Positions 2,446 through 35,422 of a DNA stretch of 63,871 bases are shown here, in pieces. Origin of the DNA: Pavona decussata. Its lineage: Eukaryota. The notes under the pieces were generated by a model that saw nothing but the letters and a program-made list of their open reading frames with translations, was not told the origin of the DNA and made no database searches. Position 1 is the stretch's first letter; every line of letters begins with the position of its first letter. A program made the translations under genes and the position numbers. The stretch is taken from NCBI GenBank assembly GCA_977016875.1, contig CDRNST010000599.1, positions 1 through 63,871 of the forward strand, given 5' to 3'.

Positions 2446-2492
2446 AAATAATGGACGAAAAGCTCACTGTATCATACAGTGAACTTACTGGT
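2446..2492 (+). ncRNA. 3' half of hammerhead ribozyme downstream of cassette gene copy 1
   Basis: GGAC-GAAA-stem III (agctcactgta/tca/tacagtgaact)-UA-CUGGU, matching the 3' part of the intact HHR at 17492-17570. No adjacent CUGAUGA. Confidence 0.75.
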
Positions 2493-2884
2493 TGCACCAC
2501 ATAAATCGTGTGATACTGAGTGAGTATAATGGCAATGATGTTCATGCTCTGTCATGATACTCACTCTATGTGATAAAGAAATCATACTGTGTGTGTCTCA
2601 TGTGTCTCATAGTATTGCCTTTACGTCATTTGTTGATAAAGGAGCATGATACCAATGACACAGCAATATAATTATTAACAAATTAGATGATTTCAGACAA
2701 GATGACAGAGTCAGAAAGTAAGGCACGGGAAGATATTCTGTAGTGTGTAATGACTAGCTCTGTGCCTTCAGTCTGTGGCTGTCGTGGACCGACAAGCCAC
2801 TTTTACACATGCACTGTATTGATACCGTGTATCTTCCTGGTTGCTCATATATTGTCATCCATTTATGTTTCATGTTAACAAAAA

Positions 2885-5500
2885 AAGTATCTGTGAAAGT
2901 ATCTGTGAAAGTGGCTTACCGGTCCACGACAACCACAGACTGAAGGAACAGAGTTACCTCCAAGCTACTTATTTTGGTGGAAGTATCTCTGTAAGTGGCT
3001 TGTCGGTCCATAGAGTTACAGACTGTAGCCACAGAGCAATCACCATGTAATTTATTGTGGTGGAAGTGCTAGTGAAATTGGTTTGTTAGTCCACGACAGT
3101 CACAGACTGAAGGTACAGAGCTATCTCCATGATACTTATCCTGGTGGAAGTATCTGTGAATGTAGCTTGTCGGTTCACGACAGCCACAGACTGAAGGAAC
3201 AGAGTTACCTCCAAGCTACTTATTTTGGTGGAAGTATCTGTGTAAGTGGCTTGTCGGTATATACAGTTACAGACTGCAGCCACAGAGCTATCTCCATGCT
3301 ACTTATCCTGGTGGAAGTATCTGTGAATGTGGCTTCACGATCCACAACAGCCACAGACTGCAGCTACAGAGTCATCACCATGCAACTTATTGTGGTGGAA
3401 GTATCTGTAAAAGTGGCTTGTCAATCCATGACAGCCACAGATTGAAGGCACAGAGCTACCTCCATGCTACTTATCTCAGTGGAAGTATCTGTAAAAGTGG
3501 CTTGTCAGTCCATGACAACCACAGACTGAAGGTACAGAGCTATCTTCATGCTACTTATCTCGGTGAAAGTATGTGTAAAAGTGGCTTGTTGGTCCATGAC
3601 AGCCACAGACTGAAGGCACAGAGCTATCTTCATGCAACTTACTGTGGTGGAAGTACTTGTGAAAGTGGCTTGTCAGTCCACAACAGTCACAGACTAAAGG
3701 CACAGAGCTATTTCCATGCTACTTATCTCAGTGGAAGTATCTGTAAAAGTGGCTTGTCTGTCCATGACAACCACAGACTGAAGGTACAGAGCTATCTCCA
3801 TGCTACTTATCCAGGTGGAAGTATCTGTGAATGTGGTTTGTCGGTTCACTCAGTCACAGACTGCAGCCATAGAGCCATCACCATGCAACTTACTGTGGTG
3901 GAAGTACTTGTGAAAGTGGCTTGTCAGTCCACAACAGTCACAGACTAAAGGCACAGAGCTATTTCCATGCTACTTATCTCAGTGGAAGTATCTGTAAAAG
4001 TGGCTTGTCTGTCCATGACAACCACAGACTGAAGGTACAGAGCTATCTCCATGCTACTTATCCTGGTGGAAGTATCTGTGAATGTGGTTTGTCGGTTCAC
4101 TCAGTCACAGACTGCAGCCATAGAGCCATCACCATGCAACTTACTGTGGTGGAAGTACTTGTGAAAGTGGCTTGTCAGTCCACAACAGTCACAGACTAAA
4201 GGCACAGAGCTATTTCCATGCTACTTATCTCAGTGGAAGTATCTGTAAAAGTGGCTTGTCTGTCCATGACAACCACAGACTGAAGGTACAGAGCTATCTC
4301 CATGCTACTTATCCTGGTGGAAGTATCTGTGAATGTGGTTTGTCGGTTCACTCAGTCACAGACTGCAGCCATAGAGCCATCACCATGCAACTTACTGTGG
4401 TGGAAGTACTTGTGAAAGTGGCTTGTCAGTCCACAACAGTCACAGACTAAAGGCACAGAGCTATCTCCATGCTACTTATTCTGGTGGAAGTATCTGTGAA
4501 AGTGGCTTGCCAGTCCACAACAACCACAGACTGAAGGAACAGAGTTACCTCCAAGCTACTTATTCTGGTGGAAATGTCTGTAAAAGTGGCTTGTCAGTCC
4601 ACGACAGCCACAGACTGAAGGAACAGGGCTATCTCCATGCTACTTATCCAGGTGGCAGTATCTGTGAATGTGGCTTGTCGGCCATGACAGCCACAGAGTG
4701 AAGGCACAGAGCTAGCTTCATGCTTCTTATCTCAGTGGAAGTATCTGTAAAAGTGGCTTGTCAGTCCACAACAGCCACAGAGCCATCACCATGCAACTTA
4801 TTGTGGTGGAAGTATTTGTAAAAGTGGCTTGTCAATCCACGACAGCCACAGACTGAAGGCACAGAGCTACCTCCATGCTACTTATCTCAGTGGAAGTATC
4901 TGTAAAAGTGGCTTGTCAGTCCATGACAACCACAGACTGAAGGTACAGAGCTATCTCCATGCTACTTATCCTGGTGGAAGTATCTGTAAATGTGGCTTGT
5001 CGGTCTACGATAGCCACAGACTGAAGGCACAGAGCTATCTATCTCCATGCTACTTATTCTGGTGGAAGTATCTGTGAAAGTTATATTTGTGTGTGTTTGT
5101 CTCACAGTGGAAGTATCTGTAAAAGTGGCTTGTCAGTTCACGACAGCCACAGCATAGAGTTACCTCCATGCTACTTATTTTGGTGGAAGTATCTGTAAAA
5201 GTGGCTTGTCGGTCCATACAGTTACAGACTGCAACCACAGAGCCATCACCATGTAACTTATTGTGGTGGAAGTGCTTGTGAAAGTGGCTTGTCAGTCCAC
5301 GACAGTCACAGACTGAAGGTACAGAGCTATCTCCATGCTACTTATCCTGGTGGAAGTATCTGAATGTAGCTTGTCTGTGCTACTTATTTTATTATCCTAC
5401 TGGAGGTATCAGAGAATGTTACTCATACTTTGATGAGAGTTTCGGCATGCATCCAAAGGTCTCCATGCCACTAATCCTGGTGGAAGTATCTGTGAAAGTT
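2885..5500 (+). repeat. 84-bp satellite array, forward (AGCCACAGACTGAAGG strand), with a 251-bp higher-order repeat
   Basis: Unit ~agccacagactgaaggcacagagctatctccatgctacttatcctggtggaagtatctgtgaatgtggcttgtcggtccacgac. ORF starts at 3921, 4172 and 4423 show the 251-bp (84+84+83) period. Preceded by a short reverse unit at 2756-2810. Confidence 0.95.
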
Positions 5501-7302: not shown

Positions 7303-8486
7303 AGTGGCACAGACTGCAGCACAGAGCTACTTATTATGGTGGAAGTATCTGTGAATGTGGTTTGTCGGTTCACTCAGTCACAGACTGCAGCCATAGAGCC
7401 ATCACCATGCAACTTACTGTGGTGGAAGTACTTGTGAAAGTGGCTTGTCAGTCCACAACAGTCACAGACTAAAGGCACAGAGCTATCTCCATGCTACTTA
7501 TCCAGGTGGCAGTATCTGTGAATGTGGCTTGTCGGCCATGACAGCCACAGAGTGAAGGCACAGAGCTAGCTTCATGCTTCTTATCTTATCACAGATGCTA
7601 CTATCACCATGCTACTTATTCTAGTGGAAGTATCTGTGAAAGTGGCTTATTGGTCCATGACAGCCACAGACTGCAGCCACACAGATGCCTCCATATTACT
7701 TATTCTGGTGGACAGACAGTCACAGACTGAAGGTACAGAGCTATCTCCATGATACTTATCCTGGTGGAAGTATCTGTGAATGTAGCTTGTCGATTCACGA
7801 CAGCCACAGACTGAAGGAACAGAGTTACCTCCAAGCTACTTATTTTGGTGGAAGTATCTGTGTAAGTGGCTTGTCGGTACATACAGTTACAGACTGCAGC
7901 CACAGAGCCATCACCATGCAACTTATTTTGGTGGAAGTGCTTGTGAAAGTGGCTTGTCAGTCCACGACAGTCACAGACTGAAGGTACAGAGCTATCTCCA
8001 TGCTACTTATCCTGGTGGAAGTATCTGTGAATGTGGCTTCACGATCCACAACAGCCACAGAGTCATCACCATGCAACTTATTGTGGTGAAAGTATCTGTA
8101 AAAGTGGCTTGTCAATCCATGACAGCCACAGACTGAAGGCACAGAGCTACCTCCATGCTACTTATCTCAGTGGAAGTATCTGTAAAAGTGGCTTGTCAGT
8201 CCATGACAACCACAGACTGAAGGTACAGAGCTATCTTCATGCTACTTATCCTGGTGGAAGTATCTGTAAATGTGGCTTGTCTGTCTACGATAGCCACAGA
8301 CTGAAGGCACAGAGCTATCTCCATGCTACTTATCTCAGTGAAAGTATGTGTAAAAGTGGCTTGTTGGTCCATGACAGCCACAGACTGAAGGCACAGAGCT
8401 ATCTTCATGCTACTTGTCCTGGTGGAAGTATCTGTGAATGTGGCTTGTCGGTCCACGACAGCCACAGACTGAAGGCACAGAGCTAG
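7303..8486 (+). repeat. 84-bp satellite array, forward
   Basis: Same unit as 2885-5500; abuts the 3' flank of inverted cassette copy 2. Confidence 0.93.
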
Positions 8487-8738
8487 TCATTACACACTAC
8501 AGAATATCTTCCCGTGCCTTACTTTCTGACTCTGTCATCTTGTCTGAAATCATCTAATTTGTTAATAATTATATTGCTGTGTCATTGGTATCATGCTCCT
8601 TTATCAACAAATGACGTAAAGGCAATACTATGAGACACACACAGTATGATTTCTTTATCACATAGAGTGAGTATCATGACAGAGCATGAACATCATTGCC
8701 ATTATACTCACTCAGTATCACACGATTTATGTGGTGCA

Positions 8739-8785
8739 ACCAGTAAGTTCACTGTATGATACAGTGAGCTTTTCGTCCATTATTT
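8739..8785 (-). ncRNA. 3' half hammerhead of cassette copy 2
   Basis: Reverse complement of 2446-2492. Confidence 0.72.
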
Positions 8786-9060
8786 ATTATTATTTATTAT
8801 TGTCTAGGATGCCAACTTCTAGTACTTATAATAAACTTCCAGTGCTTCTTATAGTAGTCTATATTTTGTTAGAGGCACTAGAAGTTTATAAGAAGTACTA
8901 GAAGTAAACTAGACTAATAGGCGTCAAGCATAATGTATACTTGTGATACGTATCCATTGTAGTCAACCTTAACTTCTATAGCAAAGTGAATCTTAATTAT
9001 ACAATGGAAGTGGTATAAGAAATAATTTGTGTATAGCGGAATATGATACAGCTTCCCAGG

Positions 9061-10863
9061 TTATTCTGGTACAAAACGTTTTAAATACACTTTTTTCTCC
9101 TTAACAATGGCTAAAGGTACTGTCACTGAATGTGTGATACGTTCAGGGACTTCAGAGGGTTGTTTTCCCTTTCTCTTTGCCGTAATTTTTTTACTGTACT
9201 TTTCTACACTACTTTCATAATATGAGTTCCACATTGTCTTTGGCCACTGCAAAACTTTGTGCTCCGCAAGTATTAGTGTATTTGTTAATTGTAATGGCAC
9301 TCCTGAAGATGAAGACACTCCCAACATTAGAACAATAAGTAGAACAAGACCCGTCAAGTGTGGTTTGTTTTCTTTGGTGTTCCAAAATTTAATGGCCTCT
9401 GCAGTAGTGAGAACTAAATCCAGTTCCAGTACTCTCAAGAATGGTCTGAATGCCTCCCGGGAGCCTGCATAACATTATGTCCTCAAACAATCAACCTGAA
9501 TAAAAATCTTGGAGACTTCAGATGGTAAACCATCTGATTTTCATTAAATTTTGTGTACATACCTGAAATAAAGAGAACAGGTTTGTCTCTGATCTGCTGT
9601 ATCTCAGACAATGAAAGGCATTCTACTACAGCTTGGGGATCTGTAGAAAATAAATTTGTAGTAGATAAACAAAGGGACTTAACTTACTTCCTTATTTAAA
9701 CTTACTAGGTGGCTTTGTGCGCAATGAATTGCGTGTCTTTGCTGATATACCAATGGCATCATCAACTGGAACAGTTTCGTTGCTCTCACTAAGAACAATA
9801 CCAATAGCAGTAGGGAAGTCAATGCTGCTCTCCTCACCAATCCGACTAGCAATTACGTCTACATCACCATGAGGCAGAGTTTCACCAGCAATTTCACATT
9901 GCGTAAACACGACAGAATTACTTCCTAACACTGCTGAAGAAATACTTGACCATAGAAGTTCGTCAAAGTCCTCCTTAAACAAAAAACACAGATTAAGATA
10001 ATAATGAACACTAAAGTATGAGACCCTCGGAGCTGTATTAAAGCATGCACTTGACATAATCGTTTCCAGTCTTGTCCAGAACTGTTGGTGAGTCTTCTGT
10101 CTAATGCATTTAGTGAAACTCACACAATATGTATGTCTTCAACGCCAAAAAGGAACGTTATAACTCCTCACTCGACACTTATGAACAAGGTACATGTATA
10201 TGTAGCAGCTAGCGTGGAGACAGACAGAAACACACACACATACAAACCTTCTGACCATGGCCTGACTGTGTCGAGTCAACTTGAGCTTTCGCACAAATGT
10301 CAGCAATATGATGTATCAAACCCTCAATCTTCAGGATAGTAGCAGCATCCATCGTCATTTCGTTTGTAACATATTCAACAACAAAGTTACGTTGATCATG
10401 ATGCACTTTTACTTCCAAATTTGTAGCTGTATGATTAATTTTTATTAATACACTTCCCTTTAAAATTATTAACTTTACTACTTAGGCTATACACCCCCTA
10501 TACTTCCTTACGAATTGAACTAAATGATCTGTTGAGTGCAGAGGATAAAGTGGTATGTTTCCCTGTTGGGTGAAGAGTGATCGGAAAAAGAGAAGTACAT
10601 ATAACTTCTTCCAGAGTGGTTCTAATTTCGTTCTTAGAAAGGATTCGAAAGGTTCCCAGAGAAGAGAGTGGTCCACAATAAAATCTTTCCGCATCTAGAC
10701 CAAGTTTCTCCAAAGTCGTCTGTTTCTTTCTTGGAGGGCCCTTTTTTTAGAAAGAGAGGAGAGAGTGACCTGCAACCCTTTTACCCAGACCCCTTTTCTC
10801 GATTCTTTTGTCTCTTACCTCAGCATCATGAGATTGCAATTTAGAAGAATGTCCAGGATCCAT
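9061..10863 (-). CDS. Cassette gene copy 2 (variant B2), inverted
   Basis: Position p of copy 1 maps to 11231-p with the same splice sites. Exon 3 reads YVTNEMTMDAATILKIEGL. Confidence 0.75.
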
Positions 10864-11251
10864 ATTCCTATAGTATGTATAGAATAGCACGGACCTAGTT
10901 CCAATCATAATGAGCCAATTTAAGTTGTGGCCACATCGCTTGTTATAGTGGTTAACTCTTAATTAAATGCGTAGATGCATTTCATCTCTACTTACTCTTT
11001 AGTTGAAGACAAGGAAAAGAGCGGACGGCGAGAAACCTAGATAGGACAAAAAAGTTCTCGATCTAAAATTGAGGTGCGAACTCATTAATATTCCACGTGA
11101 CTTTTGCACATACCAATGCGTGTCATTGTGGGTGTGTCCCCATACTGTTCGCCCCATGCATATGTAAGCGCATCAGTAGCAGAGTATCTGTATTATCTGT
11201 ATCACATATAGAGTAAGTATTAGGACAATTGAGCCACAATATCTGTGGTAG

Positions 11252-14200
11252 TAGGATAAGTAGCATGGAGATAGCTCTGTGCCTTCAGTCTGTGGCTGTC
11301 ATGGACCAACAAGCCCCTTTTACTAGCACTATAATTTACACTGTCGTGGACTGACAAGCAACTTTCACAAGCACTTCCACCACAATAAATTGCATGATGT
11401 TAGCTCTGTGCCTTCAGTCTGTGACTGTCGTGGACTGACAAGCCACTTTCACAAGCACTTCCACCACAATAAGTTGCATGGTGATGGCTCTGTGGCTGCA
11501 GTCTGTAACTGTATGGACCGACAAGCCACTTACACAGACACTTCCACCAAAATAAGTAGCTTGGAGGTAACTCTGTTCCTTCAGTCTGTGGTTGTTGTGG
11601 ACTGGCAAGCCACTTTCACAGATACTTCCACCAGAATAAGTAGCATGGAGATAGCTCTGTGCCTTCAGTCTGTGGCTGTCGTGGACAGACAAGCCACTTT
11701 TACAGATACTTCCACTGAGATAAATGGAAATAGCTCTGTGCCTTTAGTCTGTGACTGTTGTGGACTGACAAGCCACTTTCACAAGTACTTCCACCACAGT
11801 AAGTTGCATGGTGATGGCTCTATGGCTGCAGTCTGTGACTGAGTGAACCGACAAACCACATTCACAGATACTTCCACCAGAATAAGTAGCTCTGTGCTGC
11901 AGTCTGTGGACCAACAAGCCACTTTCACAAATACTTCCACCAGAATAAGTATCTTCCTGGACCGACGAGCCACTTACACAGATACTTCCACCAGAATAAG
12001 TAGCATGGTGATGGCTCTATGGCTGCAGTCTGTGACTGAGTGAACAGACAAACCACATTCACAGATACTTCCACCAGGATAAGTAGCATGGAGATAGCTC
12101 TGTACCTTCAGTCTGTGGTTGTCATGGACAGACAAGCCACTTTTACAGATACTTCCACTGAGATAAGTAGCATGGAAATAGCTCTGTGCCTTTAGTCTGT
12201 GACTGTTGTGGACTGACAAGCCACTTTCACAAGCACTTCCACCACAATAAGTTGCATGGTGATACTTCCACCAGGATAAGTAGCATGGAGATAGCTCTGT
12301 ACCTTCAGTCTGTGGTTGTCATGGACAGACAAGCCACTTTTACAGATACTTCCACTGAGATAAGTAGCATGGAAATAGCTCTGTGCCTTTAGTCTGTGAC
12401 TGTTGTGGACTGACAAGCCACTTTCACAAGCACTTCCACCACAATAAGTTGCATGGTGATGGCTCTGTGGCTGCAGTCTGTAACTGTATGGACCGACAAG
12501 CCACTTACACAGACACTTCCACCAAAATAAGTAGCATGGAAATAGCTCTGTTCCTTCAGTGTGGCTATCGTGGACCGACAAGCCACTTTTACGGACACTT
12601 CCACCAGAATAAGTAGCATGGAGGTAGCTCTGTGCCTTCAGTCTGTGGCTGTCGTGGACCGACAAGCCACATTCACAGATACTTCCACCAGGACAAGTAG
12701 CATGAAGATAGCTCTGTGCCTTCAGTCTGTGGCTGTCATGGACCAACAAGCCACTTTTACACATACTTTCACTGAGATAAGTAGCATGGAGATAGCTCTG
12801 TGCCTTCAGTTTGTGGCTATCGTAGACCGACAAGCCACATTTACAGATACTTCCACCAGGATAAGTAGCATGGAGATAGCTCTGTACCTTCAGTCTGTGG
12901 TTGTCATGGACAAACAAGCCCCTTTTACTAGCACTATAATTTACACTGTCGTGGACTGACAAGCCACTTTCACAAGCACTTCCACCACAATAAGTTGCAT
13001 GGTGATGGCTCTGTGGCTGCAGTCTGTAACTGTATGGACCGACAAGCCACTTACACAGACACTTCCACCAAAATAAGTAGCTTGGAGGTAACTCTGTTCC
13101 TTCAGTCTGTGGTTGTTGTGGACTGGCAAGCCACTTTCACAGATACTTCCACCAGAATAAGTAGCATGGAGATAGCTCTGTGCCTTCAGTCTGTGGCTGT
13201 CGTGGACAGACAAGCCACTTTTACAGATACTTCCACTGAGATAAATGGAAATAGCTCTGTGCCTTTAGTCTGTGACTGTTGTGGACTGACAAGCCACTTT
13301 CACAAGTACTTCCACCACAGTAAGTTGCATGGTGATGGCTCTATGGCTGCAGTCTGTGACTGAGTGAACCGACAAACCACATTCACAGATACTTCCACCA
13401 GAATAAGTAGCTCTGTGCTGCAGTCTGTGGACCAACAAGCCACTTTCACAAATACTTCCACCAGAATAAGTATCTTCCTGGACCGACGAGCCACTTACAC
13501 AGATACTTCCACCAGAATAAGTAGCATGGAGATAGCTCTGTTCCTTCAGTCTGTGGCTATCGTGGACCGACAAGCCACTTTTACGGACACTCTGTTGTGG
13601 ACTGACAAGCCACTTTCACAAGTACTTCCACCACAGTAAGTTGCATGGTGATGGCTCTATGGCTGCAGTCTGTGACTGAGTGAACCGACAAACCACATTC
13701 ACAGATACTTCCACCAGAATAAGTAGCTCTGTGCTGCAGTCTGTGGACCAACAAGCCACTTTCACAAATACTTCCACCAGAATAAGTATCTTCCTGGACC
13801 GACGAGCCACTTACACAGATACTTCCACCAGAATAAGTTGCATGGAGATAGCTCTGTTCCTTCAGTCTGTGGCTATCGTGGACCGACAAGCCACTTTTAC
13901 GGACACTTCCACCAGAATAAGTAGCATGGAGGTAGTTCAGTCTGTGGCTGTCGTGGACCGACAAGCCACATTCACAGATACTTCCACCAGGACAAGTAGC
14001 ATGAAGATAGCTCTGTGCCTTCAGTCTGTGGCTGTCATGGACCAACAAGCCACTTTTACACATACTTCCACCAAAATAAGTAGCTTGGAGGTAACTCTGT
14101 TCCTTCAGTCTGTGGTTGTTGTGGACTGGCAAGCCACTTTCACAGATACTTCCACCAGAATAAGTAGCATGGAGATAGCTCTGTGCCTTCAGTCTGTGGC

Positions 14201-15935
14201 TGTCGTGGACAGACAAGCCACTTTTACAGATACTTCCACTGAGATAAATGGAAATAGCTCTGTGCCTTTAGTCTGTGACTGTTGTGGACTGACAAGCCAC
14301 TTTCACAAGTACTTCCACCACAGTAAGTTGCATGGTGATGGCTCTATGGCTGCAGTCTGTGACTGAGTGAACCGACAAACCACATTCACAGATACTTCCA
14401 CCAGAATAAGTAGCTCTGTGCTGCAGTCTGTGGACCAACAAGCCACTTTCACAAATACTTCCACCAGAATAAGTATCTTCCTGGACCGACGAGCCACTTA
14501 CACAGATACTTCCACCAGAATAAGTAGCATGGAGATAGCTCTGTTCCTTCAGTCTGTGGCTATCGTGGACCGACAAGCCACTTTTACGGACACTTCCACC
14601 AGAATAAGTAGCATGGAGGTAGCTCTGTGCCTTCAGTCTGCGGCTGTCGTGGACCGACAAGCCACATTCACAGATACTTCCACCAGGACAAGTACCATGA
14701 AGATAGCTCTGTGCCTTCAGTCTGTGGCTGTCATGGACCAACAAGCCACTTTTACACATACTTTCACTGAGATAAGTAGCATGGAGATAGCTCTGTGCCT
14801 TCAGTCTGTGGCTATCGTAGACCGACAAGCCACATTTACAGATACTTCCACCAGGATAAGTAGCATGGAGATAGCTCTGTACCTTCAGTCTGTGGTTGTC
14901 ATGGACAGACAAGCCACTTTTACAGATACTTCCACTGAGATAAGTAGCATGGAAATAGCTCTGTGCCTTTAGTCTGTGACTGTTGTGGACTGACAAGCCA
15001 CTTTCACAAGTACTTCCACCACAGTAAGTTGCATGGTGATGGCTCTATGGCTGCAGTCTGTGACTGAGTGAACCGACAAACCACATTCACAGATACTTCC
15101 ACCAGGATAAGTAGCATGGAGATAGCTCTGTACCTTCAGTCTGTGGTTGTCATGGACAGACAAGCCACTTTTACAGATACTTCCACTGAGATAAGTAGCA
15201 TGGAAATAGCTCTGTGTCTTTAGTCTGTGACTGTTGTGGACTGACAAGCCACTTTCACAAGTACTTCCACCACAGTAAGTTGCATGGTGATGGCTCTATG
15301 GCTGCAGTCTGTGACTGAGTGAACCGATAATGGAAATAGCTCTGTGCCTTTAGTCTGTGACTGTTGTGGACTGACAAGCCACTTTCACAAGTACTTCCAC
15401 CACAGTAAGTTGCATGGTGATGGCTCTATGGCTGCAGTCTGTGACTGAGTGAACCGACAAACCACATTCACAGATACTTCCACCAGAATAAGTAGCTCTG
15501 TGCTGCAGTCTGTGGACCAACAAGCCACTTTCACAAATACTTCCACCAGAATAAGTATCTTCCTGGATTGACGAGCCACTTACACAGATACTTCCACCAG
15601 AATAGGTTGCATGGAGATAGCTCTGTTCCTTCAGTCTGTGGCTATCGTGGACCGACAAGCCACTTTTACGGACACTTCCACCAGAATAAGTAGCATGGAG
15701 GTAGTTCAGTCTGTGGCTGTCGTGGACCGACAAGCCACATTCACAGATACTTCCACCAGGACAAGTAGCATGAAAATAGCTCTGTGCCTTCAGTCTGTGG
15801 CTGTCATGGACCAACAAGCCACTTTTACACATACTTCCACCAAAATAAGTAGCTTGGAGGTAACTCTGTTCCTTCAGTCTGTGGTTGTTGTGGACTGGCA
15901 AGCCACTTTCACAGATACTTCCACCGGAATAAGTA
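11252..15935 (-). repeat. 84-bp satellite array, reverse
   Basis: Reverse-complement units (cttcagtctgtggctgtc...) with recurring variant and deleted units. Confidence 0.95.
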
Positions 15936-16212
15936 ATGTCGCCTCATGTTGCCAATGAGAACGTTGGGGTTACGGCTAGAAATCGAGAAACGGTAGGGTT
16001 AGTTCAGGTTTGGGTTACAGAAGTGAGGGTCGTGTGCATTGGAACAGGGTCGAGTCACTCTACGCACACATAACGTGCAAGACCACAGTTAGTATGGACT
16101 GTGTCCCCATCGACATGAGCTTGGGGTTTGTCATAAATGGACACCATACGCTGCGCCCGTGCTAACCCTAGAAACCCCAAGGTGGGGACACATGGGGACA
16201 ATTTTATCAAAA
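15936..16212 (-). repeat. Inverted copy of the left end of the tyrosine-recombinase block
   Basis: Reverse complement of 27581-27857; ORF 16055-16276 matches ORF 27544-27738. Confidence 0.9.
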
Positions 16213-17172
16213 TATCTGTGAATGTAGCTTGTCGGTTCACGACAGCCACAGACTGAAGGCACAGAGCTATCTCCATGCTACTTATTCCGATGGAAGTATC
16301 TGTGAAAGTGGCTTGTCAGTCCACGACAACCACAGACTGAAGGAACAGAGTTAACTCCAAGCTACTTATTTTGGTGGAAGTATCTGTGTAAGTGGCTTGT
16401 CGGTCCATACAGTTACAGACTGCAGCCACAGAGCCATCACCATGCAACTTATTGTGGTGGAAGTGCTTGTGAAAGTGGCTTGTCAGTCCACGACAGTCAC
16501 AGACTGAAGGTACAGAGCTATCTCCATGCTACTTATCCTGGTGGAAGTATCTGTGAATGTAGCTTGTCAGTTCACGACAGCCACAGACTGAAGGCACAGA
16601 GCTATCTCCATGCAACTTATTCTGGTGGAAGTGTCTGTAAAAGTTGCTTGTCAGTCCACGACAGCCACAGACTGAAGGAACAGGGCTATCCCCATGCTAC
16701 TTATCCAAGTGGCAGTATCTGTGAATGTGGCTTGTCGGCCATGACAGCCACAGAGTGAAATGCTTCTTATCTCAGTGGAAGTATCTGTAAAAGTGGCTTG
16801 TCGGTCCACGACAGCCACAGACTGAAGGCACAGAGCTATCTCCATGCTACTTGTCCTGGTGGAAGTATCTGTAAAAGTGGCTTGTCGGTCCATACAGATA
16901 CAGACTGCAGCCACAGAGCCATCACCACGTAACTTATTGTGGTGGAAGTGCTTGTGAAAGTGGCTTGTCAGTCCACGACAGTCACAGACTGAAGGTACAG
17001 AGCTATCTCCATGCTACTTATCCTTGTGGAAGTATCTGTGAATGTAGCTAATGTGTCTGTGACATCCATGCTACTTATTTTATTATCCTACTGGAGGTAT
17101 CAGAGAATGTTACTCATACTTTGATGAGAGTTTCGGCATGCATCCAAAGGTCTCCATGCCACTAATCCTGGT
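16213..17172 (+). repeat. 84-bp satellite array, forward, ending in a conserved degenerate cap
   Basis: Cap ...attatcctactggaggtatcagagaatg...ccactaatcctggtg is shared with ~5378-5480 and ~31802-31906. Confidence 0.93.
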
Positions 17173-17380
17173 GTATCATACAGCATGAGTATGATTTTTT
17201 TTGTTATCCGTATGACATAGAGTGAGCATCATGACAGAGCATGAACATCATGGCAATAATTCCAATCGATATACCTAAATCACACGTAAACCACATACAC
17301 CATCCCTTGAACTCCATGATACGAGGAGCATGATACTCATTATTTCAGATATCAATGGATTTTTGCTATGATCCTCATGC

Positions 17381-17628
17381 TTACTGATTGCACCACATAA
17401 ATCGTGGGACCAACTGATGAGTCCTCCCACTAAAAATAATGGACGAAAAGCTCACTGTATCATACAGTGAACTGCTTGCACCACATAAATCGTGGGACCA
17501 GCTGATGAGTCCTCCCACTCTAAAAGTAATGGACGAAAAGTTCACTGTATCATACAGTGAACTTACTGGTTGCACTACATAAATTGTGGGACCAGCTGAT
17601 GAGTCCTCCCACTCTAAAAATAATGGAC
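17381..17628 (+). ncRNA. Tandem hammerhead ribozyme array; middle unit 17492-17570 intact
   Basis: accag-CUGAUGA-gucc-loop-ggac-GAAA-aguucacugua/uca/uacagugaacu-UA-cuggu has the full core, stems I, II and III, and predicted cleavage after A17565. gtggga (17492-17497) is complementary to loop II tcccac (17513-17518). Unit 1 has a damaged cleavage site and unit 3 stops after ggac. Confidence 0.88.
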
Positions 17629-18610
17629 ATTGCTATGATACTCATGCTGTATGATACAGATACACACAGCATTATTGTTTGCTATGATCATAGCAATGAA
17701 CCAACCAATTGATGGGTTCAGATCCCAGTTTGCCACTAGCTTTGATTGCTATGATACTGCATGGGATTACAGGACCATGATACAACTCTATGGGCACAAT
17801 AATATCGTAAAAAATCATTATACGGGGCATTGATATCTGTATCACACAGCATGGGTATTCCATATCATGGCAATAAGTCGTTTATATCATGCTCTTGTAT
17901 CATAGCATTAATTTTTATGAGGCCACATCATAAAAGCATGCCAATTTGCATTTATTGTATTAATCCGTTAATTGGTTAATTGGTTAACACTCTACAGCAT
18001 GAGTAATTATAGCAGTAATGAGTGTCAGCTTTCCTGTATCATAATGCATGAGTATCATAGCCGTAATCCCAATAAAAATCTGTATCACACAGCATGAACA
18101 TCATGGCATGAATCATGGCATCATGCTAGGTATCACAGGAACATGCTACTAAATAATGCACACGAAAACAGTCATTGCACACTACAGAAAGTACACACAC
18201 CTTATGACCTAACCCTAACCCCTAACCACAGATATTGTGGCTCAATTGTCCTAATACTTACTCTATATGTGATACAGATAATACAGATACTCTGCTACTG
18301 ATGCGCTTACATATGCATGGGGCGAACAGTATGGGGACACACCCACAATGACACGCATTGGTATGTGCAAAAGTCACGTGGAATATTAATGAGTTCGCAC
18401 CTCAATTTTAGATCGAGAACTTTTTTGTCCTATCTAGGTTTCTCGCCGTCCGCTCTTTTCCTTGTCTTCAACTAAAGAGTAAGTAGAGATGAAATGCATC
18501 TACGCATTTAATTAAGAGTTAACCACTATAACAAGCGATGTGGCCACAACTTAAATTGGCTCATTATGATTGGAACTAGGTCCGTGCTATTCTATACATA
18601 CTATAGGAAT

Positions 18611-20413
18611 ATGGATCCTGGACATTCTTCTAAATTGCAATCTCATGATGCTGAGGTAAGAGACAAAAGAATCGAGAAAAGGGGTCTGGGTAAAAGGGTT
18701 GCAGGTCACTCTCTCCTCTCTTTCTAAAAAAAGGGCCCTCCAAGAAAGAAACAGACGACTTTGGAGAAACTTGGTCTAGATGCGGAAAGATTTTATTGTG
18801 GACCACTCTCTTCTCTGGGAACCTTTCGAATCCTTTCTAAGAACGAAATTAGAACCACTCTGGAAGAAGTTAAATGTATTTCTCTTTTTCCGATCACTCT
18901 TCACCCAACAGGGAAACATACCACTTTATCCTCTGCACTCAACAGATCATTTAGTTCAATTCGTAAGGAAGTATAGGGGGTGTATAGCCTAAGTAGTAAA
19001 GTTAATAATTTTAAAGGGAAGTGTATTAATAAAAATTAATCATACAGCTACAAATTTGGAAGTAAAAGTGCATCATGATCAACGTAACTTTGTTGTTGAA
19101 CATGTTACAAACGAAATGATGAGGGATGCTGCTACTATCCAGAAGATTGAGAGTTTGATACATCATATTGCTGACATTTGTGCGAAAGCTCAAGTTGACT
19201 CGACACAGTCAGGCCATGGTCAGAAGGTTTGTATGTGTGTGTGTTTCTGTCTGTCTCCACGCTAGCTGCTACATATACATGTACCTTGTTCATAAGTGTC
19301 GAGTGAGGAGTTATAACGTTCCTTTTTGGCGTTGAAGACATACATATTGTGTGAGTTTCACTAAATGCATTAGACAGAAGACTCACCAACAGTTCTGGAC
19401 AAGACTGGAAACGATTATGTCAAGTGCATGCTTTAATACAGCTCCGAGGGTCTCATACTTTAGTGTTCATTATTATCTTAATCTGTGTTTTTTGTTTAAG
19501 GAGGACTTTGACGAACTTCTATGGTCAAGTATTTCTTCAGCAGTGTTAGGAAGTAATTCTGTCGTGTTTACGCAATGTGAAATTGCTGGTGAAACTCTGC
19601 CTCATGGTGATGTAGACGTAATTGCTAGTCTGATTGGTGAGGAGAGCAGCATTGACTTCCCTACTGCTATTGGTATTGTTCTTAGTGAGAGCAACGCAAC
19701 TGTTCCAGTTGATGATGCCATTGGTATATCAGCAAAGACACGCAATTCATTGCGCACAAAGCCACCTAGTAAGTTTAAATAAGGAAGTAAGTTAAGTCCC
19801 TTTGTTTATCTACTACAAATTTATTTTCTACAGATCCCCAAGGTGTAGTAGAATGCCTTTCATTGTCTGAGATACAGCAGGTCAGAGACAAACCTGTTCT
19901 CTTTATTTCAGGTATGTACACAAAATTTAATGAAAATCAGATGGTTTACCATCTGAAGTCTCCAAGATTTTTATTCAGGTTGATTGTTTGAGGACATAAT
20001 GTTATGCAGGCTCCCGGGAGGCATTCAGACCATTCTTGAGAGTACTGGAACTGGATTTAGTTCTCACTACTGCAGAGGCCATTAAATTTTGGAACACCAA
20101 AGAAAACAAACCACACTTGACGGGTCTTGTTCTACTTATTGTTCTAATGTTGGGAGTGTCTTCATCTTCAGGAGTGCCATTACAATTAGCAAATACACTA
20201 ATACTTGCGGAGCACAAAATTTTGCAGTGGCCAAAGACAATGTGGAACTCATATTATGAAAGTAGTGTAGAAAAGTACAGTAAAAAAATTACGGCAAAGA
20301 GAAAGGGAAAACAACCCTCTGAAGTCCCTGAACGTATCACACATTCAGTGTCAGTACCTGTAGCCATTGTTGATGAGAAAACAGTGTATTTAAAACGTTT
20401 TGTACCAAAATAA
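18611..20413 (+). CDS. Cassette gene copy 3 (variant A, apparently identical to copy 1)
   Basis: Offset +18243 from copy 1; all ORF-track peptides are identical. Confidence 0.75.
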
Positions 20414-20688
20414 TCTTGGAAGCTGTATCATATTCCGCTATACACAAATTATTTCTTATACCACTTCCATTGTATAATTAAGATTCACTTTGCTATAGAA
20501 GTTAAGGTTGACTACAATGGATACGTATCACAAGTATACATTATGCTTGACGCCTATTAGTCTAGTTTACTTCTAGTACTTCTTATAAACTTCTAGTGCC
20601 TCTAACAAAATATAGACTACTATAAGAAGCACTGGAAGTTTATTATAAGTACTAGAAGTTGGCATCCTAGACAATAATAAATAATAAT

Positions 20689-20735
20689 AAATAATGGACG
20701 AAAAGCTCACTGTATCATACAGTGAACTTACTGGT
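20689..20735 (+). ncRNA. 3' half hammerhead of cassette copy 3
   Basis: aaataatGGAC-GAAA-stem III-UA-CUGGU with predicted cleavage after A20730; complements the 5' half at 17591-17628. Confidence 0.75.
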
Positions 20736-20994
20736 TGCACCACATAAATCGTGTGATACTGAGTGAGTATAATGGCAATGATGTTCATGCTCTGTCATGA
20801 TACTCACTCTATGTGATAAAGAAATCATACTGTGTGTGTCTCATGTGTCTCATAGTATTGCCTTTACGTCATTTGTTGATAAAGGAGCATGATACCAATG
20901 ACACAGCAATATAATTATTAACAAATTAGATGATTTCAGACAAGATGACAGAGTCAGAAAGTAAGGCACGGGAAGATATTCTGTAGTGTGTAAT

Positions 20995-23095
20995 GACTAG
21001 CTCTGTGCCTTCAGTCTGTGGCTGTCGTGGACCGACAAGCCACATTCACAGATACTTCCACCAGGACAAGTAGCATGAAGATAGCTCTGTGCCTTCAGTC
21101 TGTGGCTGTCATGGACCAACAAGCCACTTTTACACATACTTTCACCGAGATAAGTAGCATGGAGATAGCTCTGTGCCTTCAGTCTGTGGCTATCGTAGAC
21201 CGACAAGCCACATTTACAGATACTTCCACCAGGATAAGTAGCATGAAGATAGCTCTGTACCTTCAGTCTGTGGTTGTCATGGACTGACAAGCCACTTTTA
21301 CAGATACTTCCACTGAGATAAGTAGCATGGAGGTAGCTCTGTGCCTTCAATCTGTGGCTGTCATGGATTGACAAGCCACTTTTACAGATACTTCCACCAC
21401 AATAAGTTGCATGGTGATGACTCTGTAGCTGCAGTCTGTGGCTGTTGTGGATCGTGAAGCCACATTCACAGATACTTCCACCAGGATAAGTAGCATGGAG
21501 ATAGCTCTGTGGCTGCAGTCTGTAACTGTATATACCGACAAGCCACTTACACAGATACTTCCACCAAAATAAGTAGCTTGGAGGTAACTCTGTTCCTTCA
21601 GTCTGTGGCTGTCGTGAACCGACAAGCTACATTCACAGATACTTCCACCAGGATAAGTATCATGGAGATAGCTCTGTACCTTCAGTCTGTGACTGTCGTG
21701 GACTAACAAACCAATTTCACTAGCACTTCCACCACAATAAATTACATGGTGATTGCTCTGTGGCTACAGTCTGTAACTCTATGGACCGACAAGCCACTTA
21801 CAGAGATACTTCCACCAAAATAAGTAGCTTGGAGGTAACTCTGTTCCTTCAGTCTGTGGTTGTCGTGGACCGGTAAGCCACTTTCACAGATACTTTCACA
21901 GATACTTTTTTTGTTAACATGAAACATAAATGGATGACAATATATGAGCAACCAGGAAGATACACGGTATCAATACAGTGTGTCTTTTCGTCCATTATTT
22001 TTAGAGTGGGAGGACTCATCAGCTGGTCCCACTTACGCACGCAACAGATGCTGAGACACACGCGCTGAGACACACACACAAATATAACTTTCACAGATAC
22101 TTCCACCAGAATTAGTAGCTCTGTGCTGCAGTCTGTGGACAGACAAGCCACTTTCACAGATACTTCCACTAGAATAAGTAGCATGGAGGTAAATGTGCCG
22201 TTAGTGTGTAGCTGTCGTGGATCGGCAAGCCACTTTCACAGATACTTCCACCAGAATAAGTAGCATGGAGATACCTCTGTACCTTCAGTCTGTGGTTGTC
22301 ATGGACTGACAAGCCACTTTTACGGACACTTCCACTAGAATAAGTAGCATGAAGGTAGCTCTGTGCCTTCAGTCTGTGGCTGTCATGGACCAACAAGCCA
22401 CTTTTACACATACTTTCACTGAGATAAGTAGCATGGAGATAGCTCTGTGCCTTCAGTCTGTGGCTGTCGTGAACCGACAAGCTACATTCATAGATACTTC
22501 CACCAGGATAAGTAGCATGGAGATAGCTCTGTGCCTTCAGTCTGTGGCTGTCGTGAACCGACAAGCTACATTCACAGATACTTCCACCAGGATAAGTAGC
22601 ATGGAGATAGCTCTGTGCCTTCAGTCTGTGGCTGTCATGGACCAACAAGCCCCTTTTACTAGCACTTCCACCACAATAATTTACACTGTCGTGGACTGAC
22701 AAGCCACTTTCACAAGCACTTCCACCACAATAAGTTGCATGATGTTAGCTCTGTGCCTTCAGTCTGTGACTGTCGTGGACTGACAAGCCACTTTCACAAG
22801 CACTTCCACCACAATAAGTTGCATGGTGATGGCTTTGTGGCTGCAGTCTGTAACTGTATGGACCGACAAGCCACTTACACAGACACTTCCACCAAAATAA
22901 GTAGCTTGGAGGTAACTCTGTTCCTTCAGTCTGTGGTTGTTGTGGACTGGCAAGCCACTTTCACGGATACTTCCACCAGAATAAGTAGCATGGAGATAGC
23001 TCTGTGCCTTCAGTCTGTGGCTGTCGTGGACAGACAAGCCACTTTTACAGATACTTCCACTGAGATAAATGGAAATAGCTCTGTGCCTTTAGTCT
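20995..23095 (-). repeat. 84-bp satellite array, reverse, interrupted by a ~180-bp spacer containing an HHR
   Basis: Reverse units with a unique spacer at ~21906-22085. Confidence 0.93.
21951..22032 (-). ncRNA. Hammerhead ribozyme variant B inside the satellite
   Basis: Reverse complement of 62062-62143. Confidence 0.8.
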
Positions 23096-30337: not shown

Positions 30338-31906
30338 TGGAGGTAGCTCTGTGCCTTCAGTCTGTGGCTGTCGTGGATTGACAAGCCACTTTTACAGATA
30401 CTTCCACCACAATAAGTTGCATGGTGATGGCTCTGTGGCTGCAGTCTGTAAAAGTGGCTAGTCTGTCCACGACAGCCACAGACTGAAGGCACAGAGCTAT
30501 CTCCATGCTACTTATCCTGGTGGAAGTATCTGTGAAAGTGGCTTGCCAGTCCACAACAACCACAGACTGAAGGAACAGAGTTACCTTCAAGCTACTTATT
30601 TTGGTGGAAGTATCTGTGTAAGTGGCTTGTCTGTCCATACAGTTACAGACTGAAGGTACAGAGCTATCTCCATGCTACTTATCCTGGTGGAAGTTTCTAT
30701 GAATGTAGCTTGTGGGTTCACGACAGCCACAGACTGAAGGCACAGAGCTATATCTCTATGCTACTTATTCTGGTGGAAGTATCTGTGTAAGTGGTTTGTC
30801 GGTCCATACAGTTACAGACTGCAGCCACAGAGCCATCACCATGTAAATTATTGTGGTGGAAGTGCTAGTGAAAGTGGCTTGTCAGTCCACGACAGTCACA
30901 GACTGAAGGTACAGAGCTATCTCCATACTACTTATCCTGGTGGAAATATCTGTGAATGTAGCTTGTCGGTTCACGACAGCCACAGACTGAAGGCACAGAG
31001 CTATCTCCATGCTACTTATTCCGATGGAAGTATCTGTGAAAGTGGCTTGTCAGTCCACGACAACCACAGACTGAAGGAACAGAGTTAACTCCAAGCTACT
31101 TATTTTGGTGGAAGTATCTGTGTAAGTGGCTTGTCGGTCCATACAGTTACAGACTGCAGCCACAGAGCCATCACCATGCAACTTATTGTGGTGGAAGTGC
31201 TTGTGAAAGTGGCTTGTCAGTCCACGACAGTCACAGACTGAAGGTACAGAGCTATCTCCATGCTACTTATCCTGGTGGAAGTATCTGTGAATGTAGCTTG
31301 TCAGTTCACGACAGCCACAGACTGAAGGCACAGAGCTATCTCCATGCAACATATTCTGGTGGAAGTGTCTGTAAAAGTTGCTTGTCAGTCCACGACAGCC
31401 ACAGACTGAAGGAACAGGGCTATCTCCATGCTACTTATCCAAGTGGCAGTATCTGTGAATGTGGCTTGTCGGCCATGACAGCCACAGAGTGAAATGCTTC
31501 TTATCTCAGTGGAAGTATCTGTAAAAGTGGCTTGTCGGTCCACGACAGCCACAGACTGAAGGCACAGAGCTATCTCCATGCTACTTGTCCTGGTGGAAGT
31601 ATCTGTAAAAGTGGCTTGTCGGTCCATACAGTTACAGACTGCAGCCACAGAGCCATCACCACGTAACTTATTGTGGTGGAAGTGCTTGTGAAAGTGGCTT
31701 GTCAGTCCACGACAGTCACAGACTGAAGGTACAGAGCTATCTCCATGCTACTTATCCTTGTGGAAGTATCTGTGAATGTAGCTAATGTGTCTGTGACATC
31801 CATGCTACTTATTTTATTATCCTACTGGAGGTATCAGAGAATGTTACTCATACTTTGATGAGAGTTTCGGCATGCATCCAAAGGTCTCCATGCCACTAAT
31901 CCTGGT
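30338..31906. repeat. 84-bp satellite, short reverse segment then forward array with cap
   Basis: Orientation switch at ~30443-30449; from ~30947 it duplicates 16213 onward (offset 14734). Confidence 0.92.
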
Positions 31907-32114
31907 GTATCATACAGCATGAGTATGATTTTTTTTGTTATCCGTATGACATAGAGTGAGCATCATGACAGAGCATGAACATCATGGCAATAATTCCAAT
32001 CGATATACCTAAATCACACGTAAACCACATACACCATCCCTTGAACTCCATGATACGAGGAGCATGATACTCATTATTTCAGATATCAATGGATTTTTGC
32101 TATGATCCTCATGC

Positions 32115-32362
32115 TTACTGATTGCACCACATAAATCGTGGGACCAACTGATGAGTCCTCCCACTAAAAATAATGGACGAAAAGCTCACTGTATCATACA
32201 GTGAACTGCTTGCACCACATAAATCGTGGGACCAGCTGATGAGTCCTCCCACTCTAAAAGTAATGGACGAAAAGTTCACTGTATCATACAGTGAACTTAC
32301 TGGTTGCACTACATAAATTGTGGGACCAGCTGATGAGTCCTCCCACTCTAAAAATAATGGAC
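32115..32362 (+). ncRNA. Tandem hammerhead array, second copy; intact unit 32226-32304
   Basis: Same as 17381-17628 at offset +14734; predicted cleavage after A32299. Confidence 0.88.
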
Positions 32363-33344
32363 ATTGCTATGATACTCATGCTGTATGATACAGATACACA
32401 CAGCATTATTGTTTGCTATGATCATAGCAATGAACCAACCAATTGATGGGTTCAGATCCCAGTTTGCCACTAGCTTTGATTGCTATGATACTGCATGGGA
32501 TTACAGGACCATGATACAACTCTATGGGCACAATAATATCGTAAAAAATCATTATACGGGGCATTGATATCTGTATCACACAGCATGGGTATTCCATATC
32601 ATGGCAATAAGTCGTTTATATCATGCTCTTGTATCATAGCATTAATTTTTATGAGGCCACATCATAAAAGCATGCCAATTTGCATTTATTGTATTAATCG
32701 GTTAATTGGTTAATTGGTTAACACTCTACAGCATGAGTAATTATAGCAGTAATGAGTGTCAGCTTTCCTGTATCATAATGCATGAGTATCATAGCCGTAA
32801 TCCCAATAAAAATCTGTATCACACAGCATGAACATCATGGCATGAATCATGGCATCATGCTAGGTATCACAGGAACATGCTACTAAATAATGCACACGAA
32901 AACAGTCATTGCACACTACAGAAAGTACACACACCTTATGACCTAACCCTAACCCCTAACCACAGATATTGTGGCTCAATTGTCCTAATACTTACTCTAT
33001 ATGTGATACAGATAATACAGATACTCTGCTACTGATGCGCTTACATATGCATGGGGCGAACAGTATGGGGACACACCCACAATGACACGCATTGGTATGT
33101 GCAAAAGTCACGTGGAATATTAATGAGTTCGCACCTCAATTTTAGATCGAGAACTTTTTTGTCCTATCTAGGTTTCTCGCCGTCCGCTCTTTTCCTTGTC
33201 TTCAACTAAAGAGTAAGTAGAGATGAAATGCATCTACGCATTTAATTAAGAGTTAACCACTATAACAAGCGATGTGGCCACAACTTAAATTGGCTCATTA
33301 TGATTGGAACTAGGTCCGTGCTATTCTATACATACTATAGGAAT

Positions 33345-35147
33345 ATGGATCCTGGACATTCTTCTAAATTGCAATCTCATGATGCTGAGGTAAGAGACAA
33401 AAGAATCGAGAAAAGGGGTCTGGGTAAAAGGGTTGCAGGTCACTCTCTCCTCTCTTTCTAAAAAAAGGGCCCTCCAAGAAAGAAACAGACGACTTTGGAG
33501 AAACTTGGTCTAGATGCGGAAAGATTTTATTGTGGACCACTCTCTTCTCTGGGAACCTTTCGAATCCTTTCTAAGAACGAAATTAGAACCACTCTGGAAG
33601 AAGTTATATGTACTTCTCTTTTTCCGATCACTCTTCACCCAACAGGGAAACATACCACTTTATCCTCTGCACTCAACAGATCATTTAGTTCAATTCGTAA
33701 GGAAGTATAGGGGGTGTATAGCCTAAGTAGTAAAGTTAATAATTTTAAAGGGAAGTGTATTAATAAAAATTAATCATACAGCTACAAATTTGGAAGTAAA
33801 AGTGCATCATGATCAACGTAACTTTGTTGTTGAACATGTTACAAACGAAATGATGGAGGATGCTGCTACTATCCTGAAGATTGAGGATTTGATACATCAT
33901 ATTGCTGACATTTGTGCGAAAGCTCAAGTTGACTCGACACAGTCAGGCCATGGTCAGAAGGTTTGTATGTGTGTGTGTTTCTGTCTGTCTCCACGCTAGC
34001 TGCTACATATACATGTACCTTGTTCATAAGTGTCGAGTGAGGAGTTATAACGTTCCTTTTTGGCGTTGAAGACATACATATTGTGTGAGTTTCACTAAAT
34101 GCATTAGACAGAAGACTCACCAACAGTTCTGGACAAGACTGGAAACGATTATGTCAAGTGCATGCTTTAATACAGCTCCGAGGGTCTCATACTTTAGTGT
34201 TCATTATTATCTTAATCTGTGTTTTTTGTTTAAGGAGGACTTTGACGAACTTCTATGGTCAAGTATTTCTTCAGCAGTGTTAGGAAGTAATTCTGTCGTG
34301 TTTACGCAATGTGAAATTGCTGGTGAAACTCTGCCTCATGGTGATGTAGACGTAATTGCTAGTCGGATTGGTGAGGAGAGCAGCATTGACTTCCCTACTG
34401 CTATTGGTATTGTTCTTAGTGAGAGCAACGAAACTGTTCCAGTTGATGATGCCATTGGTATATCAGCAAAGACACGCAATTCATTGCGCACAAAGCCACC
34501 TAGTAAGTTTAAATAAGGAAGTAAGTTAAGTCCCTTTGTTTATCTACTACAAATTTATTTTCTACAGATCCCCAAGCTGTAGTAGAATGCCTTTCATTGT
34601 CTGAGATACAGCAGATCAGAGACAAACCTGTTCTCTTTATTTCAGGTATGTACACAAAATTTAATGAAAATCAGATGGTTTACCATCTGAAGTCTCCAAG
34701 ATTTTTATTCAGGTTGATTGTTTGAGGACATAATGTTATGCAGGCTCCCGGGAGGCATTCAGACCATTCTTGAGAGTACTGGAACTGGATTTAGTTCTCA
34801 CTACTGCAGAGGCCATTAAATTTTGGAACACCAAAGAAAACAAACCACACTTGACGGGTCTTGTTCTACTTATTGTTCTAATGTTGGGAGTGTCTTCATC
34901 TTCAGGAGTGCCATTACAATTAACAAATACACTAATACTTGCGGAGCACAAAGTTTTGCAGTGGCCAAAGACAATGTGGAACTCATATTATGAAAGTAGT
35001 GTAGAAAAGTACAGTAAAAAAATTACGGCAAAGAGAAAGGGAAAACAACCCTCTGAAGTCCCTGAACGTATCACACATTCAGTGACAGTACCTTTAGCCA
35101 TTGTTAAGGAGAAAAAAGTGTATTTAAAACGTTTTGTACCAGAATAA
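33345..35147 (+). CDS. Cassette gene copy 4 (variant B1)
   Basis: Offset +32977 from copy 1 with the same splice sites. Exon 3 reads HVTNEMMEDAATILKIEDL. Confidence 0.75.
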
Positions 35148-35422
35148 CCTGGGAAGCTGTATCATATTCCGCTATACACAAATTATTTCTTATACCACTT
35201 CCATTGTATAATTAAGATTCACTTTGCTATAGAAGTTAAGGTTGACTACAATGGATACGTATCACAAGTATACATTATGCTTGACGCCTATTAGTCTAGT
35301 TTACTTCTAGTACTTCTTATAAACTTCTAGTGCCTCTAACAAAATATAGACTACTATAAGAAGCACTGGAAGTTTATTATAAGTACTAGAAGTTGGCATC
35401 CTAGACAATAATAAATAATAAT

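Follow-up and report, generated by a model that had tools for sequence, protein, structure and literature searches.

Does the short tandem array of this Pavona decussata contig encode hammerhead ribozymes, and if so, by what route did they enter the DNA and how much of their activity is left? The window, the whole stretch of DNA analyzed here, is the entire 63,871-bp contig (C599) of a 602-Mb assembly. On fold, pattern and homology the array is a real, mostly decayed three-unit tandem hammerhead, with predicted self-cleavage at one site; its history, its possible tertiary contact and its relation to a partial unit and a gene downstream are weighed in turn.

Genomic setting

Contig C599 is built mostly from an 84-bp satellite, found in both orientations, together with large segmental duplications, some direct and some inverted. 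One of these, 5.4 kb in length, pairs 16210-21626 with 30944-36338 at 98.6% identity and includes the array; the second array (32115-32363, + strand) is base-for-base identical to the first (17382-17629) and, since it lies within the duplicated segment, counts neither as an independent insertion nor as independent evidence.

2893-5081, 11340-15935 and 42720-49940, both orientations: examples of the 84-bp satellite

The satellite, the hammerhead family and the flank of the array were found on no other contig of the 602-Mb assembly; C599 may thus stem from a region that is poorly represented, or possibly be foreign DNA in this assembly. Three adjacent ankyrin-repeat ORFs, probably exons or one broken gene (57057-59986), and an ORF with a PCNA-associated-factor domain (39289-39735) indicate an animal origin of the contig. 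A telomere-type repeat of about three CCCTAA units (18205-18228, + strand) forms an exact junction between duplicated modules; a copy of the region downstream of the array (7718-11249, - strand) stops at this junction and gives way to satellite, and a metagenome contig carries a 21-nt insertion at the position that matches 18227 of the window.

Layout of the array and state of its units

The array and the elements of its three units, all on the + strand, are as follows; R1 and R2 are covariance models introduced in the next section.

17382-17629, + strand: tandem array, 2.7 x 94 nt, from Tandem Repeats Finder and sequence reading
17404-17479, + strand: unit 1 hammerhead, core kept and substrate side decayed; 54.6 bits with model R1
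17492-17575, + strand: middle unit, a complete type I hammerhead by fold, R1, R2 and descriptor
17492-17501 (3' strand) with 17566-17575 (5' strand), + strand: stem I of the middle unit
17502-17508, + strand: CUGAUGA of the middle unit
17509-17512 with 17531-17534, + strand: stem II of the middle unit, GUCC/GGAC, 4 bp
17513-17530, + strand: loop II of the middle unit, 18 nt, A-rich
17535-17538, + strand: GAAA of the middle unit
17538-17549 with 17553-17564, + strand: stem III of the middle unit, 12 bp including A15.1-U16.1, with a UCA loop
17565/17566, + strand: predicted scissile bond UUA/C (core numbering: A15.1 = 17538, U16.1 = 17564, H17 = A17565)
17586-17628, + strand: unit 3, 5' half only, with the stem I 3' strand, CUGAUGA and the stem II hairpin; a partial match of 49.7 bits with R1

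Tandem Repeats Finder places a 94-nt unit 2.7 times, with 89% matches, at 17380-17628 and again at 32114-32362, and the CUGAUGA boxes at 17414, 17502 and 17596 are spaced 88 and 94 nt apart. Each unit amounts to about one hammerhead with three closed stems, of which stem I is closed by a 10-nt loop; the array has a GC content of 0.42, and its units differ by 11% plus indels. Of the invariant core of the hammerhead clan (Rfam CL00010), CUGANGA and GAA, the first is present as CUGAUGA in all three units and the second, within the GAAA that follows stem II, in units 1 and 2. The three-helix arrangement (G10.1-C11.1, A15.1-U16.1 and a base other than G at position 17) is found in the middle unit and fails in units 1 and 3. 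Unit 1 reads CCAA for CCAG, has an A15.1.G16.1 mismatch, and bears a 4-nt deletion that takes out the cleavage site (UA) and the CUGG of stem I; the hammerhead descriptor missed it in the window scan. Unit 3 ends directly after stem II, without GAAA. The bond 17565/17566 is thus the sole intact predicted cleavage site of the array, reachable by the upstream box (type I, 17486-17580) or by the downstream box (type II, 17531-17606), and because only the middle unit retains an intact site, the locus cannot release 94-nt monomers.

What the original prediction had read from the letters survives this inspection. Its three units about 90 bp apart agree with the repeat period and the box spacing, and its perfect core is legible in every element at 17492-17575; its 11-bp stem III is the same helix that reaches 12 bp once A15.1-U16.1 is counted, its duplicate array at 32115-32362 is the identical copy within the 5.4-kb duplication, and the type II hammerhead that it saw in 17531-17606 folds as claimed.

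Evidence for hammerhead identity

The minimum-energy fold of the middle unit (17486-17580) is the hammerhead three-way junction itself, at -33 kcal/mol and z = -5.08, and the type II permutation (17531-17606) reaches -31.2 kcal/mol and z = -5.83. A descriptor composed of the core, a 4-bp stem II, GAAA, a stem III of at least 4 bp starting with A-U, a non-G base, and a 4-bp stem I matched the window only at 17502, 32236 and 62072 (+) and at 22022 (-), and matched none of 100 Markov simulations of the window. Covariance model R1 gives the middle unit 80.8 bits; model R2, which was built from the foreign copies alone, gives it 67 bits (E = 4.5e-19). Together with the compensatory changes in stems I and III that are described below, the fold, the descriptor control and the match to R2 bear out the hammerhead identity.

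The search with Infernal and the Rfam hammerhead models that the original prediction had suggested as a check missed its threshold: at gathering score (34 bits for Hammerhead_1) the entire window gave no hits. Ranked by E-value, Hammerhead_1 fell on the array at 15.7 and 13.1 bits in the wrong register, on a sister copy elsewhere in the window at 15.9 bits in the right register, and on the foreign copies at 23 bits, also in the right register. The long loop II (17-18 nt) and the long stem III (up to 28 nt) account for these sub-threshold scores.

Sister element and foreign relatives

A second member of the family lies within the satellite of the same contig.

62008-62187, + strand: sister element, a 180-nt insert in the 84-bp satellite with one complete hammerhead of the same family
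62062-62146 (aligned form 62056-62152), + strand: sister hammerhead, predicted site UUC/C after 62138; 70.5 bits with R1 and 65 bits with R2
21907-22086, - strand: inverted duplicate of the 180-nt sister element, with its hammerhead at 21942-22038

The sister hammerhead shares stem I, core, stem II and loop II with the array; its stem III has a wholly different sequence in which pairing is kept. The element ends in AAC and an A-run, with an exact 15-nt duplication on either side (61993-62007 and 62188-62202), and the A-tail and the exact duplication together are a signature of target-primed reverse transcription.

In a metagenome collection, 104 loci matched a pattern of the core plus a long loop II. 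About 60 copies are clearly related, and every one of them lies on contigs WLWD01/WLWI01; about 45 of the loci were set aside as bacterial or phage type III hammerheads that share only GUCC...GGAC-GAAAAG with the family; several of these (L030-L032, L041-L043 and others) have loops of 12-22 nt and lie just upstream of terminator-like hairpins. The WLWD01/WLWI01 copies read GUGGGGCCAG, with the same core and stem II, a near-identical loop II, a 6-bp stem III and the site UUC/CUGGCU. They are often dimers about 444 nt apart, accompanied by a (CA)n tract and a 23-nt minisatellite, the layout of a retrozyme-like tandem unit. In BLAST comparisons the window and these contigs have the ribozyme alone in common, from 17492 to 17544.

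Across the family stem III takes three unrelated sequences, all of them paired. The double-sided pair changes, one in stem I (G-C to A-U) and two in stem III, were matched by 0 of 500 shuffles, in a sample that is shallow at two or three lineages; the alignment (A2) was made without the sister copy, which was aligned by covariance model instead (A3). Searches of the 602-Mb assembly at the DNA level, with the exact core pattern and with the covariance model, found no further copies off contig C599, and a collection of viral contigs gave 0 matches. A family confined to one 64-kb contig is not proliferating in this genome, and for lack of copies elsewhere in the assembly there is no within-genome covariation set.

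A candidate pseudoknot

The middle unit also contains the two strands of a candidate pseudoknot.

17492-17497, + strand: candidate pseudoknot 5' strand GUGGGA, the last one or two bases in common with stem I
17513-17518, + strand: candidate pseudoknot 3' strand UCCCAC, the first six bases of loop II

The strands are complementary at 6 of 6 positions, with a duplex energy of -8.7 kcal/mol, where complementarity of at least 4 bp is the criterion for contacts of this type; the helix would join the strand 5' of stem I to the bases right after the 5' strand of stem II. The same topology is common, in about 40% of hammerheads, and disruption of the pseudoknot lowers the rate 20- to >100-fold at 0.5 mM Mg2+ (Perreault et al., 2011; PMC3088659). 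Homology begins exactly at the G of GUGGG whatever lies upstream, in at least six mutually unrelated contexts (the array units, the sister copy, two foreign subfamilies and two further contigs from sequencing runs); on the opposite side, in sister and foreign copies, conservation ends with the 6-bp stem I. This sharp boundary implies that four bases that stem I can spare in the sister and foreign copies have been kept, and they are complementary to CCAC. UCCCAC is conserved both within the window and among about 60 foreign copies, and a variant, CCCUAC, still pairs via G.U.

The original prediction of a probable contact between stem I and loop II stands in so far as the 6-bp complementarity, the published topology and the conservation are concerned; on the other side, the aligned set holds no double-sided covariation in the pseudoknot (one change from G-C to G.U, with 95.9% of cells paired), and a competing use of the same GUG exists in the array units, where it can lengthen stem I by three pairs at about -6.8 kcal/mol. 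Loop II, moreover, is conserved as a whole and not in CCCAC alone. Judging from this pattern of conservation and complementarity, GUGGG(A)/(U)CCCAC is probably a genuine pseudoknot.

Flanks and possible mode of insertion

A direct repeat borders the array on both sides.

17363-17381, + strand: left 19-nt direct repeat, a candidate target-site duplication, matching the right copy at 18 of 19 positions
17630-17648, + strand: right 19-nt direct repeat

In a control for such repeats, 21 of 3000 window pairs (0.7%) reached 17/18. The 19 nt are the start of a motif of about 30 nt that is cut short to the left of the array and complete to its right, the pattern expected of a target duplication. The motif recurs nearby in both orientations, and this local repetitiveness weakens the reading as a 19-nt duplication; measured against the duplications of more than 4 bp that mark retrozymes, the array offers a 19-nt repeat with 18/19 matches within a locally repeated motif. 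The stretch 17630-18110 is filled by short inverted copies of a motif of about 30 nt. As a weak indication from elsewhere, a diverged metagenome contig joins 17307 to 17629, with the array absent.

An alternative history, marked by an equally striking repeat, is legible at the right end of the array, which finishes on ...AAATAATGGAC; the same 11 nt recur exactly 3060 nt downstream and are there followed by GAAA. This looks like the trace of a 3060-nt segment that may have been inserted into a longer array with an 11-bp duplication, and the two duplication readings, of 19 nt and of 11 bp, are mutually exclusive. The 19-nt flanking repeat, taken with the A-tail and 15-bp duplication of the sister element, would point to retroposition. 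Two further arrangements were considered and rejected: a Penelope-style pLTR comprising array, gene and half-unit, because the ribozyme-bearing ends stop at different points, and a single 3.4-kb insertion, because the outer flanks have no common duplication.

The half-unit and the gene downstream

The second copy of the 11 nt opens a partial unit that is found, as a block, at several places in the contig.

20689-20753, + strand: 3' half-unit, with the end of loop II, GGAC, GAAA, stem III, an intact site after A20730, the stem I 5' strand and loop I
2446-2510 (+), 35423-35487 (+), 8721-8785 (-) and 63341-63405 (-): the same half-unit block elsewhere

Folded together as two pieces, unit 3 of the array and the half-unit at 20689 form a canonical hammerhead junction at -29 kcal/mol, in which the distal GGAC is preferred. 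Between array and half-unit lies an intron-containing gene (about 18612-20413, + strand), two ORFs of which, scanned separately, matched no Pfam family. A diverged paralog lies at 63450-63871 (- strand), with about 95% identity to the 3' end of the gene (20100-20420); after it come an unrelated spacer of about 205 nt and then the same block, starting CATCCTAGAC, with the 3' half hammerhead. Two inverted-repeat arms of 59 nt, 85% complementary (17202-17260 and 20769-20827), enclose everything from the array through the 3-kb gene segment to the 3' half hammerhead.

Probable origin of the array and alternative explanations

We read the array as a short, ageing copy of a hammerhead repeat that is small and non-coding, of the retrozyme or SINE-like kind found in animals, with a probability of roughly 0.6. 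Most likely, a multimeric or circular hammerhead RNA would have been reverse-transcribed at a staggered chromosomal nick; alternatively, one unit may have been inserted and then duplicated locally. The 5.4-kb segmental duplication would have copied the array later. If the + strand is transcribed, the middle unit is expected to fold as a type I hammerhead and to make a single cut, after A17565, with a 2',3'-cyclic phosphate and a 5'-OH as the resulting ends; equally, the middle unit and the next CUGAUGA could fold as type II and cut the same bond. The fold would probably be held by the pseudoknot of 5-6 bp in which GUGGG(A), immediately ahead of stem I on its 5' side, pairs with (U)CCCAC at the start of loop II. 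Units 1 and 3 have lost the ability to cut, which leaves the locus incapable of releasing 94-nt monomers.

No run on record as RNA contains the array stretch, and transcripts were found neither in two runs of presumed RNA from this organism nor in one metagenome run and one run from another organism; small RNAs are easily missed in such data. A 244-nt contig from one run (X24, guessed RNA, same organism) shares only 31 nt with the window (17492-17522); beyond the start of loop II it is unrelated and rich in CTAGAA-like words, and it may represent a broken copy or an unassembled junction.

The dominance of tandem and segmental duplications in this contig, the restriction of the family to contig C599, the 11% divergence of the units plus their indels, and array ends that do not fall at cleavage sites would also suit an origin purely at the DNA level, in which a single hammerhead was expanded by slippage or unequal crossing-over, was never mobile as RNA, and has activity only by accident. 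This account is unlikely in view of the 19-nt flanking duplication, the marks of retroposition on the sister copy (A-tail and exact 15-bp target-site duplication), and the relatives that occur elsewhere in retrozyme-like tandem units. The array might instead have no cleavage activity at all, being a dead relic or a look-alike, and the GUGGGA/UCCCAC helix might be an inactive fold that sequesters the core; this reading is very improbable. It draws on the sub-threshold Rfam scores, on the nested minimum-energy folds of the sister and foreign copies, which use the GUGGG/CCCAC helix at the cost of stems I and II, and on the cleavage triplet, UUA being less usual in hammerheads than GUC. Yet all invariant core positions, G10.1-C11.1, A15.1-U16.1 and a non-G base at 17 are present, the junction is the minimum-energy structure (z = -5), and the pseudoknot topology has been shown experimentally to activate hammerheads.

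A more elaborate proposal would make the array part of an RNA-processing cassette. An intact hammerhead would cut at 17565/17566 and a split hammerhead at 20730/20731, releasing a gene-carrying RNA of 3165 nt that might then be circularized; the split ribozyme would consist of the 5' half of unit 3 and of 20689-20753, with stem II closing a loop of about 3.1 kb. The half-unit begins exactly where the array ends, with an exact overlap of 11 nt and the unit phase kept, the two pieces cofold into the canonical junction at -29 kcal/mol with preference for the distal GGAC, all parts and the gene ORFs lie on the + strand, and a 3' half also stands downstream of the diverged gene paralog. However, an insertion with an 11-bp duplication into the A-rich loop would leave the same pattern, the local GGAC (17625-17628) forms first during transcription and competes, the copy at 7718-11249 (- strand) has the gene and the 3' half without the array, and about 1 kb separates the array from the likely start codon downstream, with the telomere-repeat junction at 18205-18228 in between; the runs examined held no RNA evidence for it. 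We regard such a cassette as quite improbable, and it appears very improbable that array and half-unit are a ribozyme pair that excises a 3165-nt RNA with an animal nuclear protein-coding gene, possibly in circular form. Such a pair, if true, would be a gene-carrying retrozyme-like unit. A lesser variant of this improbable reading takes the 94-nt unit for the genomic trace of an "all-ribozyme" circular RNA, near the minimum size for a self-cleaving replicon.

With the retrozyme or SINE-like reading, the array is a partly decayed example of repeat-borne animal hammerheads and retrozymes and not a new kind; it stands out by its very small unit and by a probable tertiary contact of an unusual kind that has been published before. 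In the biology of this genome it probably survives as a relic. The family itself is an addition from marine animals: a type I hammerhead, with a long loop II and a probable pseudoknot, that current Rfam models miss; since the family is missed at gathering score, censuses that use this score undercount repeat-borne hammerheads. Its three natural contexts (the 94-nt closed unit, the 180-nt A-tailed retroposon, and the units of about 444 nt in tandem in another organism) provide a ready set for asking whether fast cleavage depends on the pseudoknot and what the lower size limit of a retrozyme unit is.

Comparison with known systems

The known non-LTR retrozymes of animals consist of tandem type I hammerhead repeats of low GC content with duplications of more than 4 bp (PMC7229834), and their RNAs measure about 170-400 nt (Cervera and de la Pena, 2020; PMC7229834); retrozymes have also been tied to Penelope-like elements, with consensus lengths of 51-972 bp (Li et al., 2026; 10.64898/2026.07.22.740005). 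The array resembles them in its low GC content (0.42), its flanking duplication of more than 4 bp and its setting in a marine invertebrate genome, and its foreign relatives form tandem units of about 444 nt. Its head-to-tail repeats are built on a type I hammerhead motif that is complete in one of the 2.7 units. It differs in a unit of 94 nt that is nearly all ribozyme, compared with RNAs of about 170-400 nt (PMC7229834), in a length of only 2.7 units with one intact ribozyme and site, and in the restriction of the family to contig C599 within a 602-Mb assembly, where retrozymes have many dispersed copies. Retrozymes are expressed as linear and circular monomers, whereas no RNA of the array was detected in the runs covered here, in which small RNAs are easily missed. 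Given consensus lengths from 51 bp upward, the 94-nt unit is small but not unheard of.

With the hammerheads of Perreault et al. (2011; PMC3088659) the array family shares a candidate Watson-Crick contact of 5-6 bp between a loop or extension of stem I and the bases that follow stem II, as well as a stem I of 5-6 bp and a stem II of 4 bp. Whereas those examples are mostly bacterial type II hammerheads with few others, the array belongs to a eukaryotic repeat, takes a type I or closed form and has an A-rich loop II of 18 nt, and the contact in its family is a candidate recognized by its conservation. With Rfam Hammerhead_1 (RF00163), the sister and foreign copies have the register of CCAG/CUGG, CUGAUGA, GUCC/GGAC and GAAA in common; they part from it in score, 13-23 bits across the family in place of 34, and in a loop II of 17-18 nt and a stem III of up to 28 nt that are far longer than those of the model.

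Canonical minimal type I hammerheads of the Penelope type are abundant in the same genome. The hammerheads of Penelope-like elements are, like the array family, of type I and repeat-borne, but they read CUGACGAG, with a 6-nt loop II and a stem III of 1-2 bp, whereas the array family reads CUGAUGAG, with an 18-nt loop II that includes the candidate pseudoknot strand and a stem III of 6-12 bp. Penelope-type hammerheads above the Rfam cut-off lie on contigs C206, C287, C274 and others (L020-L029), several of them in inverted pairs 280-500 nt apart. Finally, Sm-alpha of Schistosoma is a SINE-like hammerhead retroposon, and the 180-nt sister copy, with its central hammerhead, A-rich tail and 15-bp target duplication, is of a similar build; unlike Sm-alpha, the sister element is present in one copy and its duplicate.
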